Under the pieces are notes generated by a model. It was not told the DNA's origin. It worked only from the letters and a program-made list of their open reading frames with translations, and made no database searches. Positions 36,659 to 48,506 of a stretch of DNA of 64,000 nucleotides are shown in pieces (position 1 is the stretch's first letter; the number at the start of each line of letters is the position of its first letter). The DNA comes from Trichosphaerium sp. ATCC 40318 (taxonomy: Eukaryota; Protista; Tubulinea): the NCBI GenBank assembly GCA_038496445.1, contig JALMLS010000631.1, positions 145,388 to 209,387 on the forward strand, written 5' to 3'. Both the position numbers and the translations under genes were made by a program.

Positions 36659-36909
36659 TACCAACAGCAAAGCTCAATAAAATATAATAGTAACACGACT
36701 TAATGCACTGTTGACAACATGTTCGTTGTGTAGGTTTTGAAGTTGTCAGGTTCTGTGAATACAGTTTGCTGATATTAGTTGACCCAGACATTGCTGGGTC
36801 GTTTATAGGCTTTAACACTACATATCTCGCCAGGTACTTGAGCTGAATAGTGTGTATTGTAGAATTTATCTCAATAACGTAATGATTGTGCTGTATCGCC
36901 GTCATTCGC

Positions 36910-38860
36910 ATGGCTCGATTCATTAGGGATGCTTTGCAATTAAATATCGCTAATTGTACTAAACAAACTCGACAACGTAAGAAAACGTTCCAAGCAGATA
37001 TAAAACGAACCGCTGCCGTACGTTTTCTTTAAAACAGACATTAAAGCTCAAATGACAGTGTAAAAATTAGCTAAAAGTTCTGACGTGACTTTAAGCGCCT
37101 AAACATCAAGAAACGCAACGCAAACTTGACACTTGACCAAAAACGAGTAGCTTTTGAAGAGGCGGCAATGGTATTGCGCGTGCACCTCTTCTCTGATTGG
37201 TACAACGTAGGTATGCAAGATTTGGTACGAGCCAATAAGCAAGTGCAATACTGGCACGTGATTAGCTGTCAAATAATTTTGCAACTAAAATTTACAATTA
37301 GGGAGAATCGTAGTGGGCTGATTACAACTTATCTATTCGAGATTTATCCTGACTACAACTGGGACTCATGGAAATTCAAGTACATTTAAAAAGTGAAAGT
37401 AGAGCATGTGTTAACAAGAACACAGGGTTGTACCTACTGAGTTTTGGAGTGATCGATTTAATTGCCTTGCTTGTCTCAATTATATTGGTGGTCTATTGAA
37501 TGTTAAGGTTCTAGAAGATTGGAATACTATTAGTGCACAAGATTTCGCAAAGCATGGGGCAGGAAAATTGCTCAGGTTCGCCATTGACAAGTAGAAAAAA
37601 GCTAAAAGTATAACGTGTTTAGTCACTTCGACAGCAGTATTGTGGCTTGTCTAGAGTACGCTTTTCCACATTATCAGTGGAAGTCGCAAGTAAGAAGGAC
37701 AGGTGAGATATATTGGAGTGATACAAAGAAACAGTCAAAGAGACTTGAAGTGATTGGACAGCGTCTTGGTATGAAGACACTAGATGATTGGTATAAAATA
37801 GAAAAACGACAAATAGTTAGGATGAGTTCACGTGAGATGTTGTACGTGAAATCTATTTACGTGATTGACTGCGCCTTTTCTCACTTGTTTGTAATAGAAA
37901 TGTTCATAATGGATCTGTGTATAATTGTTTACAGACAGCCTTTCCTTCATACGAGTGGAGCCCTTATAAATTTAGAAAGAAAGCCTTTTGGCAGACTTCA
38001 AAAAATAGAACAAATTTCTTGGGTGAGATAAAGCAACGATTTAACATTACCAACCCCGATGCCTGGTAAGACTTATTATTTCAAGACACGTTGTAAATAT
38101 TATAATTTAAGGTATCGCGTATCTACGGACCAATTAAGGGCATATGGAGGTACAGGATTACTACAGTATTGGCCTCACGTTCTTGGTAACATTGAGCCTA
38201 ACTTTAAATGGCAATGGCATCGTTTTGGGTTCCTTGGAAAACATGCAGAGCAAAGGTTAGTAAATGACATATCATTTAGTGATGGGGCTAAGTGGATATT
38301 CTTAGGGCATTGGCACAGTGTATCAGGGAGATATTTCCACAAGCGGAGGTAATAGAAGAAGCAACAATAGGTTTACAAGGAATGAATTATACGCGGATAT
38401 CTGTTGATATTTATGTACCACAATATAGCTTAGCTATAGAGTATCAAGGTGTACAACATTATAGTGATACATTCAAATGGCATAGTGGGATGCAAATCTC
38501 AGAAATACAAAAAATCCGAGATATGGAAAAGAATCAACAGTGTAAAAATGCGAGTACGTTTGGAACCACTTTGTCCTCTACAGATGTTGTTAGCAACTCA
38601 CCTTGTATTTATTAGATATACACCTTGTTCCTATCCCGTATTGGTGGTCTCCAGGTGATATAGGGGCGCTTATTGCAACAATGATGTACTACTATCCAGA
38701 TCTTGGATTGGAAATACCAAGTGGTGCTGTTCCTTTGCTTGAGGAGCCTCAGGATAACAAACGTGAGTATTTTAAGTTTATCAAGATAGCTTTACTTACT
38801 CACTACCGATTAGGTAGCCCACTCATGGTGCCTCCTGCAGAAATGAACACATTTGCATAA
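36910..38860 (+). CDS. Tandem ~70-aa 'DWY' repeat protein (4 repeats) with a C-terminal RAP/Vsr-like endonuclease-fold domain (paralogue A)
   Basis: Repeats centred on SDWYNV, EDWNTI, DDWYKI and DAWYRV. C-terminus VIEE...SVDIYVPQYSLAIEYQGVQHY...RDMEKNQQCK...HLVPIPYWW. N-terminus MARFIRDALQL. Confidence 0.8.
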
Positions 38861-38987
38861 AGGGAATAATTTTATTCAAACCACTAAACCTTAATTCAAC
38901 ATTCCATTTTATTACGAATTATAGTTTTATTCTTGTGTTAGTCTCTTGTTGTCCTTCATTTGTACTGGCTTTGTAAATATTATAAGA

Positions 38988-40342
38988 TTACAAGTACTTC
39001 ATGTGGAATTCAATATGCTCTTGTATGAATGTAGAAATAAAGAAGTAGCTATGATCATAACCATCTTGCATCCTGGAAAATGTACAATCAGAAAAAAATA
39101 AATGAAATCAAAAGCTGTACCTGACATCCAATGCAACATTTGTATTTCCTTTAGCGGCAGCCTTAAACAAATGTAAAAATCTACACCAAGTACAGACAAT
39201 AGACTTACAGTAAGGTTTTCAGGTAACAGTTGCTTCTTCCCCAAGAAACCATCAACTGTACCCTACGCAAAGTTGTTACAACAAATACTGAGCCCTTCTT
39301 GGATAATCCTGATCCTTCGTAAAAGAAAACTGTTCACGTGATTACCTGGTCAACAAGAATTGGTAGAGCGTCTCCTTCTCGTTTGTAACTCTTAATCAAT
39401 TCGGTAGCATCATAAGCCTAAGTCAAGAGTAAGAATATTGGCGTTTTTTTTCAACCGAAATTTCAAAAACCAGAAAAATAGAGCACGTGCCTTCCAATCT
39501 TCTTTGTTGCTTCCAAGGTATCCCCCAAAGCATTTTTCGCCCCATGGGCAATTTACTGGGTTACTTATAGGAGCAAATGCGGAAACACTCTATACACAGT
39601 CGTGTGAGAGAACGTCGTGTGAAAAATAAAAATACCTTAAAAGTGTTTGTCTTTAAACCAATAATAAGAGCACCATGGCCGCCCATTGAATGTCCTGTGA
39701 TACCTTGCCTGTTAACGTCTACTGGTGCAAGAGATTCTACAACTTTTGGAAGCTCTTTTGTTATGTAGGAGTACATGCGATAATTTTTCCACTTTGGTTC
39801 AGTGGCGTCAACGTAGAAACCAGCGCCAGTGCCTAGACTGTTGTAAATAGATGTAAAATTGGTGTTCCTCTCCTAAGACGCTATGTAGTGCACACAAAAA
39901 GATTTAAGCGGTAACGAAGTTGTGAATATAAACGTACCAAAGTCCCAACTCTCGTCTTCACCTTCAACGCCTAGTCCTCCTTTTGATAACAATAAGCGTT
40001 TAGAAAAAAAAAAAACCGAATGACACGCACTTGGTGAAGTGTCTGGAGCGATTAGAATCAACCCCTTTTCTGCAGCGTATTTCTGGGCACCTGCCTTTTG
40101 AATAAAGTTTTGATCTGTGCACGTCAAGCCTGACAAGAAGTAGAGGACTGGGTAAGCTTTCGACGCCTAGGTATTTAGCTATTATTACGCCCAATAATAC
40201 GTACAGCGTCTTTATCATTAGAATCGAAAGGCAAATAGATGTGAAACTTCATTTTACAGCCGAGTTCGGTTGACATATGCTCATAGCGATCTACTGAACC
40301 TCCAAAGCAGCGTGTTGAGTCTAGTTGTTTAGGTGCTTCCAT
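38988..40342 (-). CDS. ESD: S-formylglutathione hydrolase (esterase D)
   Basis: [78 protein letters not shown]. Confidence 0.96.
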
Positions 40343-40509
40343 TGTTTTTTGTAACTGAAAAAATACAGTTTAAGTCGCACCACGCCTTGTACCAAGTTAA
40401 AAGCCGTTAATAGTCCATGCACAGAGTGAAACTACTCACCAGAGATTGATCCACACGCAAATTAAGAGCACCTGTCAACCAACGTGAGCTATGCGTCATT
40501 TGATGATTT

Positions 40510-43272
40510 ATGCTTCGTATTTCATCAAGAGTGGCAGCCAATAGCAGTGGTACGCAATTGTAAAAAAATACCAATAATTAGCTCTTCTACGCTTAAATGC
40601 GCGTTTTATGTACTGATGCTCATCAATTTGACTAGATAAAGCCTCCAAAAACCTTTTGAATGAGCGCTTCTTTTTTGATGTTACAATTGCACCCACATTC
40701 AACCTTAAGACAATTGACGCGTGGTACAATGTAGTAAGCGCTGATTTTTTGGACGCGGGGTTCTTCAAGTTCATAGACAGGTAAGTTTTTCAAAAAGCTT
40801 GCCTAGTCCAAGTGATCTCACTTTACCCACCAGATATGGTGGATCTCCATCCAAGTGTCTACAAAATGTGTACCCTGAATACGAGTGGGTATCGTGGAAG
40901 TTCAAGTACGTCACCTTTTCATTGCAAATCACGTGACTCCGTTTTTGATACGTCTTCTTGACGACTATGTAATGACAGTATCGTTCAAGGGGTGGTCCGA
41001 GAGGCCATTGGGAAGATATAAAAGCTAGGTTATCTAAACTTGAGGCAGTTGCAGAGGAACTTGAACTCAAAGTCGTTGAAGACTGGTATAAGGTTAATAT
41101 TAGAGCTTTTCGAAACGTTAGTGGTTCAGGAGTCTTGGCAAAGTACGCTTATGAAAACACCATAGATTAATGTTAATATCTTAAAAGAGATGGTGGATCC
41201 CTTATAAAATGCCTTGCAGAAATATATCCAAACTTTGAATGGATAGAAGACAATTTCAAGTGCGCTCATTGTCTTTGATTGTCAAAAAAATGTTGTTCCT
41301 TACTTTTTCTTTTTTGTACTTTAGTATGGTGACACGAGGTCATTGGAGCGACCAAAACAATCTTGTAGATTTTTTTAATAAGGTTGGTGAAAAAGAGGGA
41401 ATAAAGGATTTAGATGGATGGTATGACCTATCACGTAAGGCCATGGAAAAACACAATATATTTCGGTTTATAAGGTAAACTATTTTTCTGATCCCTACCT
41501 GCTTTGTCATCATTTCATCGTGTCTAAGACTTCTTTGCATAGAAGTAAAAAGGGGTTACTGGATAAACTTATTAAAGTATTTCCTAATTACCGATGGCTC
41601 CCAGTAGAGTTTTGGGAAAGCAGGTTTCTTCTTATTTGCATTTTTCAACATTGAGTGACCTGTTGTTAGACGTGCGCCTGCTGGGTATTGGAACTCAATG
41701 GATAATCAACGCGCTCAATTTGAGGTTATTGGCCGACTATCGGGGATCAAGACAATGGATGGTTGGTATAAGGTCCCACAAGAAAAAATACTCAGCGATC
41801 AATCTTTGAACTCCATAATGATATCAAAGTGCGTCCCACAGTTTTTAACCAGTTGAATACTCAAATCTTGTCAGGTATAGTGGATATTTAGATAAGGCAC
41901 TGATGAGGTTGTATCCTCATTACTCTTGGGATTCATCACAGTTCAAATCTAGACGTACTAAACACCGACAGCATATCAACATGCAAAGAATGATTTTCGA
42001 AAATATTGGTAAAGAACTGGGTGTTAAGATGCTAGATGATTGGCGGGATATACCTGCTACAGATATTGCAAAGAAAGGTGGATCAGGAATTGTTCAATTA
42101 AAGTACTACACTGCATAAAGAGAAGATGTAAACTGACTTGTTCAACAAAAGGTATAATTCGTCAAGGAACAAAATGTTACAAGGTCTTTATCCACAACAT
42201 CCATGGAATTTTCCTGTCATTGAATACGTTGAAAAAGGCCACTGGTACGCTTAAACACTTACTGAACACCAAGTTTACATAATTCATTAACTAACTAGGC
42301 TCGACACAACAAATCAGCGCTCGTTTTTAACGAAAGCCACTAAAGCATTGAATATTACTAACAACGAACAATGGTGCCACCTTTTTTTATCTTTTCTTTT
42401 TCTTATTAATGGGTAAAGGTATCGTGTTTCAGAGGATCAAATACGCTCTTTAGGCGGTAAAGGATTACTTGCCTATTTCCCAAGAGTTCTAAGTGTACTT
42501 GATTCTGAGTTTCCTTGGCAATGGCATAAGTTCTTACATAAAGCAAAAAGAGCACGACAAAGGTACAATATATTCAACACGTGTTGAGGCTTAATCTCAT
42601 ATCAAAATTTGCAGGTGGCTTCGCCATAGTATCAAGAGAGTATTACCTTCTATTGAAGTATTAGAAGAGCATGCTATTGGTAGCATTAACGCATCTGGGA
42701 GCCCTTTGACAGTTGATGTATTTGTTCCAAAACATGACCTTGCTATTGAATATCAGGGTACGCATACTTGTTTGCCTGCAACGACTTATATGCTTTGTAA
42801 AGGAGAACATCACTATCACGAAAACATGGCTTACTCTCAACCAAAAGCGATGTATCTCCTACGTGATTTTGAGAAAGCTCAGCATTGCAAAGACAATGGT
42901 AAGAAAAAGCAACTAAAGAGTTTTTCAGCTCAAACTTTAATTGAACTTCCTTAGGTATATGTTTGGTGCCTATACCATATTGGTGGCCTGGCGATTTAGA
43001 TACACTTGTAGCAACATTATTATATTTTAAGCCAGACCTTGAGGTTTCTCATAAAATCACTAAACACATTGAACCATTATGTGAAAAACCAGTTGAGAGT
43101 ATTCAGCCAGGTGACTCTCCAGGTACGCTTGATATCCTTTTTATTTCTTTTGTTTCTATCAAAAAGGGTTAAGGCACTTTACTAATGATTGTTCTTACAA
43201 GGTGAGAAACTAATGAAGCCTACTTCAAATACAAGAGATACATTTGTTGAAATGGTTATTCAATGTACATAA
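40510..43272 (+). CDS. Tandem ~70-aa 'DWY' repeat protein (6 repeats) with a C-terminal RAP/Vsr-like endonuclease-fold domain (paralogue B)
   Basis: MLRISSRVAANS; repeats DAWYNV, EDWYKV, DGWYDL, DGWYKV, DDWRDI and EQWYRV. C-terminus VLEE...TVDVFVPKHDLAIEYQGEHHY...RDFEKAQHCKDNGICLVPIPYWW. Confidence 0.8.
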
Positions 43273-43801
43273 TCGACAAGGTTTGAAGTCATTGGCGGGT
43301 GTACACACTATATACTTGTATGGGTTGTACTCAGATTACACTCGTGTTGAGGCATTAACTGGTGCACAGAATGTAATATACTAGCAAAATGCTCATTTTT
43401 TAATCACAATGAGTTTGTTTATGCTTTGTGATAGAAAAAAATTATTGTGCCACAAAAGTTAGTACCATGAACGCCCTTTAGTACCAATAACATTATATCT
43501 GGTTTCACTTTTTTTGCAGCACCGTTTTTGAAGTTGAAATTTATAAAACGTTTCTGTCATCAAGATATTTCCGCTGGATTATCCGCTTATTTCCTATTTT
43601 AAAAAACGGTACATGTGCCTTTTGTCTAGAAGTTCTTGCCTGAGGCAAGGAGAGATAGTTTCCTATAGTTGAAACCGACACGGCCGCTCAGAAAAAAACC
43701 GGAAAATTCCGCGGAAAAGCTACCTTAACATCAAGTACATTATATCGTCATTAAACGAATATAAAAGTATGGCAGATAGCACTTTGGTCGAAGTTGAAGG
43801 C

Positions 43802-44525
43802 ATGACGCTCCATTGGGGTGACGAAGTACCTAAAGTACGTGAAAACAGCTTGTAAACGCGCTATCAAATTGATACCGCCGTTTATTGTAAAGGTAAGGTT
43901 AAACCTCGTATAGAACATTAAAGACATAGCTCTCAAGTACATAAAAGAAAATCCCGGGTACACCATTGACATAGAGCCTTGTACAAAAACGTACGCAAGA
44001 CGGTGCCCTCGAAACATGTCCCATTAATTCTTTATGAAGTGTATCAGTTGAAATAGATGGAGTAGTTGTCGCTGAAAGTAAAGAGGCTGTAGAAGTTCAC
44101 GAAACAGCGCATAAAATGGTAGGTCAACAACTGCAAAGAGTCTAGCAGCTACGCCAAATGGAGTAGTTAAGCTTCATTTGCGCTAGTAAAAGTTGCATGA
44201 AAAAAAACACGTGTTTAAATCGACTGTTGACTGGATTAACCTTAGGTTTATTACTTACCACGAAAGGATGTCAAGGGGAAATTTGACTCCAGGAAGGAAC
44301 ATACTGTGCGTATTCAACTGGTTTACAATATGATTTTTGACTTTCTGTTGTATTTAGAGTCACTGTCCTTTTAAGGGTATGGCGTCATACTATGATATAG
44401 ATATAAATGGTAAACAATACTCTAATGCTATTTGGAGCTATGAGACACCAATAGATAGTGTAAAAGGAATCAAGGATCTGGTTTCTTTCATGCCACAAGA
44501 AACGTTGAAATGGAAGGTTGAGTAG
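43802..44525 (+). CDS. DUF427 (NTP_transf_9) domain protein
   Basis: V.IDGVVVAES..A..V.ET....VYYLPR.DV, SHCPFKGMASYY, NAIWSYETP...V..IKDLVSF; 4 introns. Confidence 0.88.
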
Positions 44526-44653
44526 CCAGTGTTTAGTCTTGCATCTATTGTTACAATGTGTCAATGCTAGATATCTTTGTTTTTAATCACGTGAGCAATA
44601 AAGTAAAATAAATGGTGTTTGACAAACTTTGTTTATTGAAAGCAAAGCAAGAC

Positions 44654-45552
44654 TTAATGACACAAGTTTTGCATGGTTTCAGCTCCTTTTACTGGAGGAG
44701 ATGTCGCTGAATTTTCTGTCACAAGCTTGATAGCAACATGGAAAGGATCATGGACTGTCTTAAAGATAGCGTCACCTTGTACGTTGTTCCAAAACTGAGC
44801 AACTTTAGGAGGAAGTTGATCATCGTATTTCCCAACATAAACACTCTGAGCAAGAGATGAAGCTAGTACCAAATCAGCTATACTTAAGTTCATTCCAACA
44901 AGCCAATGAGAATCTTTAAAGTAATTGTCATTATAAAAAGATAGCTAAACAGAAAAGTCAGGAATAAAACCACCTCTGAGAATACTCACCTCATCATGTA
45001 GTTTGTTATGTATTTCTCTTACTTTGCCAGTGTCTTTTTCCTTTACTTTGAGAACAGTAGGTCCAAAGAATGATTCATATGCTAGAGTGTTGGAAGTCAC
45101 AACAACATTTCCTCTTAACGACTCATAAACACTGTCAATCTGTTTTGATAATACTTAGCTTAACACTGCCACTAACAGTCGTTTACCTTTGATAGCGATT
45201 CCAGGTCAGTAACTGGATAAAGCAAACTCGATTTTTTGATGCACAAATACCTTTGACAAGTCAGGATAAAACTATCACAATGGGGTGAACAAAAATACCT
45301 TGCTATTGCCCCTGAATCGCATACGATAGAGTCTTCATCCTTTAAAACGGGTATTTTACCTCTAGGATTCAATGACAAGAATTGTGGCGTCTTTTGCTCG
45401 CTCTTGACGAGGTTAACTTCCTTTGAAGAATAAGATGTCATGTGTAATAAAGGTAGTCGTACTGATAGCTTTACGTTTACATTTGTAGCCACTGCTACCA
45501 TGTACGCAAATCTTGATGGTAGAGATAACGGATTCCAATAGAGGGTTGTCAT
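44654..45552 (-). CDS. Glutathione S-transferase (theta/phi-like)
   Basis: LYWNPLSLPSR, V.LVKSEQKTPQFLSLNPRGKIPVLKDED.I+.DSGAIARYL, WLVGMNLSIADL. Confidence 0.88.
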
Positions 45553-45994
45553 TTAGTATTTCACTATAAGTATCAGTCAAATTCCAAACGAAATTTCACC
45601 TTTTTTTGTACCGGCGTTTTTTCCTTTACTTTATTTTCCCGATGGTACACATAAAATTTATCCGTGTCATCTTCTCTCAAAGTTTGAGCAATATCTCAGG
45701 TATACCCACATGGGATAAGTTTGTGTTCGAAAAACTTGTGTAATCAGAGGCTCAACCGTGTTCACAGAACGATTTTCTTGGTTCTGGGCTTCGGTTTCTA
45801 AGTATTACAGCTTGACACTGTGAATATTAATATCAACTCAGTGGGTAGAACGGTACTTTTTAGAGCATCTGAGGCTCGAGAGTCAAATTCACTAGAGTTT
45901 TGACTCAATTTTGATTCTCTTAAATGTTGACTTTTGTGTTTGTAATTAAACGGAACAAAGGCAACGCAACGGGTGCCAAATACCTCCACTACAA

Positions 45995-46873
45995 ATGAAA
46001 CGTCGCAAACGCAAAGTAAAGATCGTAGGCAGAAAGAAGAAAAAGGCGCCAACAACGAATAACACTCTAAAAGCGCTGAAACAATCTCCATTCGAAAACT
46101 ACGATATTGCCGTGCTCATAGTACAAACAGCATTTCCTGTAGTAAATTTTACACAAATTAACGCCTGGGGACGTCTAAACACCACACTTCACGAAGTAGT
46201 CAATGCTGAAGCGACGTTAAGCCATTTTTACGAGCGTCATTATTGCCCAAAATATAAAATCACAGGCACCCTCTCAGATCCTTCTATCATCAAAGAATTC
46301 TTGCAAAACCGCCTCAAATTCGATAGAGAACCCACGCCGAAAAAGCCACACTTAACCAGCTGTTTCATGGCCGACAACCATCTCGGCGATGACGCTCGCA
46401 ATAAGCTCAGAATGGTTATACAACGTAGTACTCTTCCTGATAACCTAAGGTTGATCACACGCTACAATACGTACAATACCGAAATTTACCGCATGAGCAC
46501 TGATGAAGTACGAGAATTACAAACAACAGTTGATATTTTTCCCATCCGAGCTTCTCAAGGAACAAAACCACTCAATGTGACACTAAACTGTAGTGATACT
46601 ATGGAGTTCGGTGCCGGAAGGTTAAGATGCAACATTACAATTTTACTAGACGATAAACTCGTGTGCAAAGGAGCGGCAGAATGGGGAGGCTCGTTAGACA
46701 AAATACAAGTAAAAACTGAAAATCTTGAGAAACTCTACAATATCATTAGTTGGGATAAGAGTAAAGACGCTACTAAGATTGAAAAAGTGTTGTTCATCAT
46801 GACAGCATTATCACAACTACATTGGCCTGCTGAAATACTTAGTTCAGATTACCCTCAGGTAGAAGAGGAATGA
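45995..46873 (+). CDS. Hypothetical intronless protein with a basic NLS-like N-terminus and a possible degenerate F-box
   Basis: 292-aa ATG-to-stop ORF; MKRRKRKVKIVGRKKKK; PFENYDIAVLIV...INAWGRLNTTLHEVV is weakly F-box-like. Confidence 0.6.
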   Translation: MKRRKRKVKIVGRKKKKAPTTNNTLKALKQSPFENYDIAVLIVQTAFPVVNFTQINAWGRLNTTLHEVVNAEATLSHFYERHYCPKYKITGTLSDPSIIKEFLQNRLKFDREPTPKKPHLTSCFMADNHLGDDARNKLRMVIQRSTLPDNLRLITRYNTYNTEIYRMSTDEVRELQTTVDIFPIRASQGTKPLNVTLNCSDTMEFGAGRLRCNITILLDDKLVCKGAAEWGGSLDKIQVKTENLEKLYNIISWDKSKDATKIEKVLFIMTALSQLHWPAEILSSDYPQVEEE

Positions 46874-47131
46874 ACCACTGCCTGAAAAGAAGAAAAAACG
46901 CAGAAAAAAAAGGTAAAGAACAAGCTTTTATCTCAATAAAATTCTATTCTACATTGCCTACTATTTTACACTTACACTCAAAGCTTTTTGTTGTGGACCT
47001 TGCATCTAGTTTTTTTTTGTTAGGGCATACACATGAGTCTTTTTTCACTTCAGCTCGGTTGTCAAGGCTTTCTTTCTTCTTTCCGAAGTCATTCAATCAT
47101 TCGTTCTTTGCACTTCTTGATCTCATAGGTA

Positions 47132-48506
47132 TCACAATAATGTTTGTACGGAGTTGATTAATTGCCTAAACAATTATTATTAATAACCTAACTTGCTACA
47201 GCCTTTGGCAATTGAAAAAAAATGCCTGTACTTTTGTGAAAAAAGATTCGAAAAAGTTGAGTTTACCATTGTTTAGATTTGCGAGATACTTTTGAGAAGA
47301 GGTGCCACTGCCATGTAAAATCATTATTTAAACCAGACAATGCGTAAGGGAAATAACGACAGAATCCTCCGCCTCCAAGTGCAGCAATCTGGTCAATAGA
47401 AACACGGTACCTAATTGCGAGTAAAAAAATCAATGTGACACTTTTTTGGGTTAAAAAGAAAAGCCTTTGTTGTGTCATAAAGACATGTACAAAAACTGAG
47501 AATTAAATTGAATTAGTACCAATCTTGTGGTGAGCGTATACGTAATGCATTAGCTGTAGTTTTTAAGAACGCCATTTGATTAACTGGCTCCTCCCAATAA
47601 CCAATTGGTTTCTCTCTATTGACCTTAAAATTCCATGGAAATTCTGTATAAAGTGACTGTAACATCCTTGGCAACGAACCACGATAACTAAATAAATAAA
47701 TATAAACATTAAGAGTATCTGAAGAGCAAAAAAAAAAGAAAGAAAAAAAAGTTAAATGTCATGTGTCAACAACATGTCAAAATGTCATTTTGCTTTTTTT
47801 AATTACCTATGAAGTACAGTTCCGCCTCCACGTTTTATAACCTGTGTTGTCCTCACGGTATGCCAATCACTCAGAGTTTTGACGTCAAGGGCCTTTGCTA
47901 TGTTGCTAAGAGTATTACGCTGATCATTGGCCCAAAATCGTTGAAGGTTGCTTGTAAATTGTTCTGGACGCCAATTGTATTTTGGATAAATACTACTGAG
48001 CGCCTTATACATGGAGCTGTCATACCTTGGATCAACGAGTAAGCGTTGAAAAACGGTTTTTTGCTAGTTTACTTTGTTGAGAAGATTGCAGCACCTTTCT
48101 CTGCCAGAATATCGCTAGGCGATACGCTGTACCAATCTTCTAGGGATTTTAAACGTAGGTTACGCCCAATCGCGTTAAACTTGTCTATTTGGTTTCCCAA
48201 TGCGTCCCAATGGTTTGCTGGTACGTTTTTAAAGCGCCACTCTTGCCAATTATGCGTTGGAAACAGTACGCGCAGAGCTCGCGAAAGAGAGTAATTATAC
48301 CTGTACGCTAATTAGTGGTTACGTAGTTGACGCAATTATTATTACTTTTTAAGTATGGTTCCGCCACCAGCTTGCTCTACGTCATCAGTTGTAACAGTAT
48401 ACCAGCCATTAAGTGTTGTAATGTGTAGCTTTGGTGCTAAAACAGTTATAAACAAATGTCTGTGGTGGGCTCTATTGCCTGCCCACTTGAAGGTACGGTA
48501 TTGCAT
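47132..48506 (-). CDS. Tandem ~70-aa 'DWY' repeat protein (4 repeats) lacking the nuclease domain (paralogue C)
   Basis: Repeats NGWYTV, EDWYSV, SDWHTV and QDWYRV. The last repeat ends WQWHLF..SRKSKQW|QLINSVQTLL* at the point where A and B continue into the nuclease. Confidence 0.75.

Follow-up and report, generated by a model that had tools for sequence, protein, structure and literature searches.

What would a modular array of helical repeats do when it is joined to a nuclease, and why would a single amoeba genome keep three genes with such arrays side by side? The question is raised by genes A, B and C of Trichosphaerium sp. ATCC 40318, which lie together in a 64,000-nucleotide stretch of contig JALMLS010000631.1 (assembly GCA_038496445.1), here called the window. 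An original prediction, made from the letters alone, had described them as paralogues carrying one repeat, capped in A and B by an endonuclease-like domain. We find that A and B are transcribed and that their repeat recurs in thousands of proteins, and we read A and B as repeat-guided nucleases, possibly mitochondrial, of a very large unnamed family, a reading to which we assign a probability of roughly 55%.

A repeated module in three intron-rich genes

The repeats are visible at all three loci by three-frame translation. A profile of 71 positions, built from an alignment of 11 exon units of the window, matched only loci A, B and C across the 64 kb: its unit E-values there were 1e-13 to 1e-30, whereas no match below E=1 arose outside the three loci. 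Counted in their natural register, from W..NQ.. to YP..W..F, the repeats number 4 in A, 6 in B and 4 in C, exactly as predicted; the proposed period of about 70 residues was an underestimate, the units being spaced by 72-75 residues in the window genes and most often by 75 across the family. The expected scaffold of fixed residues beside variable ones holds over 1,427 units. Conserved positions are S3, L8, Y12, P13, W17, F21, P25, W29, the NQR motif (N34-Q35-R36), L42, L46, the DWY motif (D53-W54-Y55), V57 and G66-G67, whereas some 15 positions are highly variable (entropy above 3.4 bits). About a dozen positions are rich in lysine or arginine.

No Pfam model was passed by the repeat array. 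A Pfam scan of single window exons gave no match, and across 67 members of the repeat family no Pfam family on the repeat was common to more than 16, all matches being weak (SAM_TNK, CH and Myb_Rap1). The model of DUF4046 (PF13255), a family of uncharacterised bacterial proteins, stayed under its 22.8-bit cut-off, with 15.5 bits on residues 70-369 of the marine protist transcript P0024 and 16.9 bits on P0220, and matched 3 of the 67 members at an E-value of about 0.02. We then turned to structure, using a four-repeat segment of P0024, a homologue rather than a window protein, folded with 66 homologous segments. The resulting model (pLDDT 93.2) is all-helical, with about five helices per unit and an extended linker rich in tryptophan and proline. 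Foldseek found nothing significant for it in the PDB, the best row (annexin-like giardins) having an E-value of 0.1 and a TM score of 0.17; a VIA search gave nothing above Z 4.2 among solved structures, the weak rows being single small domains (TetR helix-turn-helix, the Slx4 C-terminal domain and SAM domains); and a search of BFVD gave no match. In a shape search of the ESM Atlas, with predicted models on both sides, the array resembled DUF4046 clusters of Bacillota (TM 0.58/0.65 over 220 residues and 0.62/0.57 over 265 residues), so that the two are alike in array shape, at a TM of about 0.6, and the sequence model nonetheless falls below its cut-off. Unnamed clusters of the same shape also came from Discosea, Evosea and Tubulinea. 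A feature search of the Atlas gave, in addition, a tentative lead to giant viruses. Our literature search found no paper on DUF4046 and none describing the repeat family.

The repeat is thus, as had been proposed, not of the PPR, OPR, HPR or TALE kind: it is a five-helix unit of 75 residues that belongs to no such Pfam family and matches no solved structure. Its organization does recall TALE nucleases and PPR proteins, which likewise consist of tandem modules with a conserved scaffold, variable positions, a variable repeat number and nuclease pairing, but these show no homology to the module and differ from it in fold and period. Repeats within one protein of the family are about 25-35% alike, which is PPR-like rather than TALE-like, and a recognition code would be conjectural here.

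The genes themselves lie in eukaryotic sequence with a GC content of about 38% and short, broken-up open reading frames. We aligned contigs of four public runs (X1-X4) to 36900-42899. Many contigs skip stretches of 38-105 nucleotides bordered by GT..AG or, in the minus-strand gene that separates A from B, by CT..AC, and are therefore spliced transcripts. Genes A and B are transcribed; the joints in A come from one run (X3), with spliced contigs over 37129-38764, and those in B from runs X1-X4, which represent three studies. Within A and B (37176-42473), the X2-X4 contigs show about two dozen single-base differences from the window, probably as a result of strain or allele variation.

Gene A (36910-38860, plus strand) encodes 505 residues in a model assembled with the spliced contigs, with nine exons (36910-37017, 37096-37253, 37302-37379, 37426-37575, 37623-37841, 37898-38065, 38112-38255, 38306-38553 and 38616-38860) and eight introns in phases 0, 2, 2, 2, 2, 2, 2 and 1. 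The first intron (37018-37095) is without read support. The intron at 37254-37301 is of the GC..AG type (donor GCACGT), as judged from contig piece and depth figures, and keeps the frame; an alternative GT..AG intron at 37243-37305 was rejected in its favour, as the same figures fit the GC..AG borders. Profile matches place the array at 37140-38255, with four modules, the first degenerate. Gene B (40510-43172, plus strand) encodes 622 residues in 15 exons, in a model built on the contig joints. Its 14 introns (40550-40635, 40781-40833, 40906-40989, 41143-41187, 41260-41324, 41475-41542, 41624-41669, 41829-41874, 42103-42151, 42245-42298, 42374-42418, 42563-42614, 42758-42802 and 42899-42954) are in phase 1, then eleven times in phase 2, then twice in phase 1; the first and last were drawn from splice consensus alone, without reads. 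Its six modules, again from profile matches, span 40636-42562.

Gene C (minus strand) had been thought to end at 47132. Our model, made from splice consensus and repeat register only, with no reads behind it, runs over 47264-48506 and comprises about 307 residues, four modules and at least four introns (proposed exons 48506-48346, 48300-48073, 48025-47807, 47687-47520 and 47410-47264). No nuclease-like exon was found within 400 nucleotides downstream, and the model stops exactly at the site of the phase-2 intron that leads into the nuclease exons of A and B. As modelled, C is an array-only paralogue lacking the nuclease domain. Pairwise identity among A, B and C is only 31-36%, and each is about as far from P0024 as from the other two.

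Consecutive phase-2 introns, eleven in B (40781-42614) and six in A (37254-38305), recur at two equivalent positions of the module, after the GG..LL helix and after W....F. Such symmetric exons bounding modules suggest that whole modules can be gained or lost in frame, which would explain the broad range of repeat numbers in the family.

The C-terminal nuclease domain

In A the C-terminal domain, a predicted PD-(D/E)XK domain of the Vsr/DUF559/DUF2726 type, occupies two exons (38306-38860) and in B three (42615-43172). The C-terminal motifs claimed for the two genes are present in both spliced models: VDIYVP (38403-38420), AIEYQGVQH (38433-38459), RDMEK (38517-38531) and IPYWW (38633-38647) in A, and VDVFVP (42712-42729), AIEYQG|EHH (42742-42813, split by the intron at 42758-42802), RDFEK (42862-42876) and IPYWW (42972-42986) in B. 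An array followed by a C-terminal nuclease, as first described for A and B, is also the usual layout of the family, the domain being present in 91 of the 150 best repeat matches and mostly ending no more than two residues from the C terminus. In an alignment of 34 domains, including the nuclease exons of A and B, at least 90% share residues D46, P50, E57, Y58, G60, H63, D82 and K85. The rows of the A and B exons keep the conserved residues that they span, and the spliced models carry the full motif set. We take the conserved Asp, the His and the second Asp to be the probable counterparts of the catalytic Asp51, His69 and Asp97 of Vsr.

The fold was examined with an AlphaFold2 model of a homologue (m51811d3198fd), computed on the 34-domain alignment. 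This model (pLDDT 82.4) runs helix, three strands, helix, strand, helix, with an alpha-beta-beta-beta-alpha-beta core. Foldseek placed I-Bth0305I, Toxoplasma gondii mitoribosome chains and Vsr on top, with E-values of 1e-3 to 1e-2 and probabilities of 0.99-1.00. The VIA Z-scores were 9.4 for 9g6k_Li (T. gondii mitoribosome) and for 3hrl (NGO0050), 9.2 for 3r3p (I-Bth0305I), 9.1 for 1cw0 (Vsr with DNA), 8.3 for 6rd4_2, 8.2 for 6z1p_AS, 7.8 for TnsA, and 8.2 for 9gek_A, the FAST1-FAST2-RAP part of FASTKD4, over 107 aligned residues. On this model, the fold at the C terminus of A and B is that of restriction endonucleases in the Vsr/DUF559/RAP neighbourhood, as had been anticipated.

Within that neighbourhood, VSR, DUF559 and DUF2726 form one group, with the structures 1cw0, 3hrl and 3r3p (Steczkiewicz et al., PMC3424549). 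This group, together with I-Bth0305I, supplies the best fold matches and shares the order of the D, E..G..H and D..K/R residues, but its members are bacterial and phage DNA enzymes without a repeat array, whereas A and B are eukaryotic, intron-rich and fused to repeats. Homing endonucleases of the I-Bth0305I type are encoded in an intron, intein or mobile element, unlike A and B, which are multi-exon nuclear genes near esterase and glutathione S-transferase genes. At the level of sequence, the Pfam DUF2726 model matches 18 of the 34 domains (best E-value 5e-6) and is the only Pfam model to match many of them; two protein-level matches reached 14-15 bits against a cut-off of 24.7 bits. The DUF559 and Vsr models matched none of the 34 domains, and the RAP model (PF08373) matched one (E=0.03) and none of the window exons. 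Neither the nuclease exon nor the domain profile had a sequence match in the PDB. Taken together, the Pfam counts and the structural matches indicate that the nearest sequence family is DUF2726/Vsr-like and that RAP is a structural cousin rather than the family itself, so the initial labelling of the domain as RAP lacks the backing of sequence. A tree of the nuclease domain joins A, B and P0024 in one group (SH-aLRT 99); it draws on 118 columns only, and most of its deep forks are unsupported.

Family size, hosts and genomic surroundings

To gauge the reach of the module, we scored the repeat profile against 1.84 billion representative proteins, clustered at 50% identity. There were 7,901 matches at E<=1e-3, 4,279 at E<=1e-10 and 1,331 at E<=1e-30, and the expected variation in repeat number was evident, with 3-27 repeats per protein. 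The top 150 matches have 5-27 matched stretches and are 325-2124 residues long. Named sources are Heterolobosea sp. BB2, the amoebozoan Cavostelium apophysatum and an MMETSP transcript. The protein with 27 repeats is encoded on a 1.37 Mb metagenome contig that we take for eukaryotic from the domains of neighbouring genes (protein kinase, SRF-type MADS and arrestin). Homologue searches by sequence words, started from P0024 and from a mixed alignment, gave almost no matches and did not recover the annotated proteins of the window.

With a four-repeat profile, proteins that carry a bacterial label are matched as well. Planctomycetota, among them Pirellulales, Novipirellula and Fuerstiella, have array-only proteins of about 330 residues with four repeats. 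One array-only gene with four repeats (L002, 6001-6978) lies on a 321 kb contig whose neighbouring genes have PSCyt1, PSCyt2 and PSD1 domains, which are typical of planctomycetes. Immediately downstream of it is an ATP synthase operon, with AtpR and ATPase_gene1 among its genes. Two bacterial genes join repeats to the nuclease. One, with seven repeats, is in a Desulfobulbus metagenome-assembled genome and adjoins a NikA-like gene, a primase/AAA_25 gene and a DNA methylase; the other, in a metagenome-assembled genome of Deltaproteobacteria, has a sigma-54 activator and an AlbA_2/Schlafen gene as neighbours. A further metagenomic protein of 207 residues (P0216) carries two repeats together with LPD1 (PF18796, 77 bits), which belongs to the domains of polyvalent proteins.

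On its own, the nuclease domain turns up often in contigs of phages and bacteria, at hundreds of loci. Repeat and nuclease were joined at none of the best 80 viral loci and at one of the best 80 prokaryotic loci, and ten bacterial proteins with the nearest nuclease domains have N-terminal parts with neither a Pfam family nor the repeat. A search for related loci with P0058 returned no viral locus.

Other genes lie among the three paralogues in the window. Between A and B, an esterase gene (38940-40350, minus strand; Pfam Esterase PF00756), probably of the esterase D/S-formylglutathione hydrolase type, has eight short introns and spliced contigs in all four runs; one of its introns (39418-39490), supported by spliced contigs, is the second of the GC..AG type. 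Between B and C lie a glutathione S-transferase gene (GST_N; 44654-45552, minus strand) and an uninterrupted open reading frame of 292 residues (45995-46873, plus strand) that has a strongly basic start (KRRKRKVKIVGRKKKK) and no Pfam family, and is unusual for this intron-rich window in being intronless.

Proposed repeat-guided cleavage and its alternatives

A positively charged modular array of variable length, joined to a nuclease domain with conserved residues, is best accounted for by a sequence-directed nuclease. For A and B we infer nucleic-acid binding, cleavage, the kind of substrate and the cellular location as follows. The chain of modules would lie along the nucleic acid and recognise a stretch of it via variable surface positions, and this binding would position the metal-dependent nuclease domain for a site-specific cut; C, as an array-only paralogue, would bind without cutting. 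Proteins that combine a helical array with a small PD-(D/E)XK domain are known from RNA processing in organelles. Human FASTKD1-5, the OPR-RAP proteins of Chlamydomonas and the HPR/RAP proteins of apicomplexans resemble A and B in carrying a helical array N-terminal to a small domain of this fold. The likeness extends to superposition of the A/B domain on the RAP module of FASTKD4 (Z 8.2) and on a T. gondii mitoribosome chain (Z 9.4) and to a shared ending of a hydrophobic strand and an aromatic pair, IPYWW in A and B. By contrast, the repeats of those proteins are helix hairpins of 34-40 residues rather than 75-residue five-helix modules, and the Pfam RAP model fails to recognise the A/B-type domain.

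In A, B and many relatives the N-terminus is basic with few acidic residues, and these short basic stretches may suggest import into the mitochondrion; together with a design like that of FASTK and of OPR and HPR proteins with RAP, they count for a role that is possibly mitochondrial. It counts in the same direction that a survey of RAP proteins could not detect RAP in Amoebozoa or Excavata (PMC8190603). The repeat family occurs in amoebozoans and in a heterolobosean, that is, in the very groups where that survey found none.

Several observations weigh against repeat-guided cleavage in an organelle. The middle motif of the domain is E-Y-Q-G, as opposed to the E-x-K of classic PD-(D/E)XK enzymes, and two of its best structural matches are components of mitoribosomes. 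Gene C is without a nuclease, and a single module is only weakly like small helix-turn-helix-like domains (Z<=4.2). The family is also found in bacteria, so an organellar role cannot be its original one. For the FASTK proteins, which carry the RAP domain, a 2025 review (PMC12687428) treats as still uncertain which members are catalytic.

One alternative makes the proteins DNA-targeting conflict nucleases rather than factors of RNA processing in organelles. The arrays would read double-stranded DNA and the Vsr-type domain would nick or cut it, in the nucleus or cytoplasm, either as a defence against viruses and mobile DNA or as domesticated selfish elements. The closest relatives of the nuclease with known substrates (Vsr, I-Bth0305I and TnsA, grouped as in PMC3424549) all cut DNA, and in sequence the domain is nearer to DUF2726 than to RAP. 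The two bacterial fusions stand in mobile or defence-like surroundings (NikA-like, primase/AAA_25 and DNA methylase genes in one case, AlbA_2/Schlafen in the other), one bacterial protein couples repeats to the polyvalent-protein domain LPD1, and the nuclease domain is encoded at hundreds of loci in phages and bacteria. The module's weak likeness to helix-turn-helix, Myb and SAM-like domains points the same way, as does the N-terminus of A, which also reads like a nuclear localisation signal. The window genes, however, look like old residents: 8-14 spliceosomal introns at conserved positions, housekeeping neighbours and paralogues that are only 31-36% identical argue against recent mobility. 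The joined architecture, moreover, occurs at none of the best 80 viral and at 1 of the best 80 prokaryotic loci, and BFVD holds no match to the array. We regard a DNA-targeting conflict nuclease as doubtful, while granting it real weight.

The remaining alternatives dispense with guided cleavage. Array and nuclease-like domain might only bind RNA or ribosomal particles, as non-catalytic assembly factors like the RAP proteins of apicomplexan and ciliate mitoribosomes; the top structural matches do include T. gondii and Tetrahymena mitoribosome chains and a Polytomella ATP synthase subunit, and gene C and the array-only bacterial proteins show the array working without a nuclease. Against this stands the near-invariance of the D/E/H/D/K set in 34 diverse domains, which is more in keeping with a retained active site than with a surface that only binds, and we consider the proposal improbable. 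Still less probable, in our estimate, is that the repeats are protein-protein scaffolds without nucleic-acid recognition, next to a nuclease that is non-specific or regulated by a partner. No solved nucleic-acid-binding repeat matches the array, and its best, non-significant Foldseek rows are helical repeats of the annexin/giardin type, but the modules are positively charged with a conserved polar NQR motif, are constantly paired with a nuclease and vary in number from 3 to 27.

Repeat-guided cleavage, then, is the reading that we carry forward, and it can be extended. In its boldest form, which we offer as speculation and think rather unlikely as a whole, the 75-residue module would be a novel type of modular nucleic-acid reader whose repeat-to-sequence code can be deciphered, and it would be fused to an active nuclease of the Vsr type. 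The family would then comprise natural programmable nucleases of amoebae and some bacteria, replacing RAP, FASTK and OPR proteins in Amoebozoa and Heterolobosea and perhaps serving mitochondrial RNA editing or processing in Trichosphaerium. For the array module there is neither a solved structure nor a Pfam family to recognise it, and we could find no paper on it, yet it is present in thousands of clusters at 50% identity. If its modules read sequence, they would form a fourth modular reader beside TALE, PPR and PUF, one already coupled to a nuclease, and the family would fill the reported absence of RAP proteins in amoebae.

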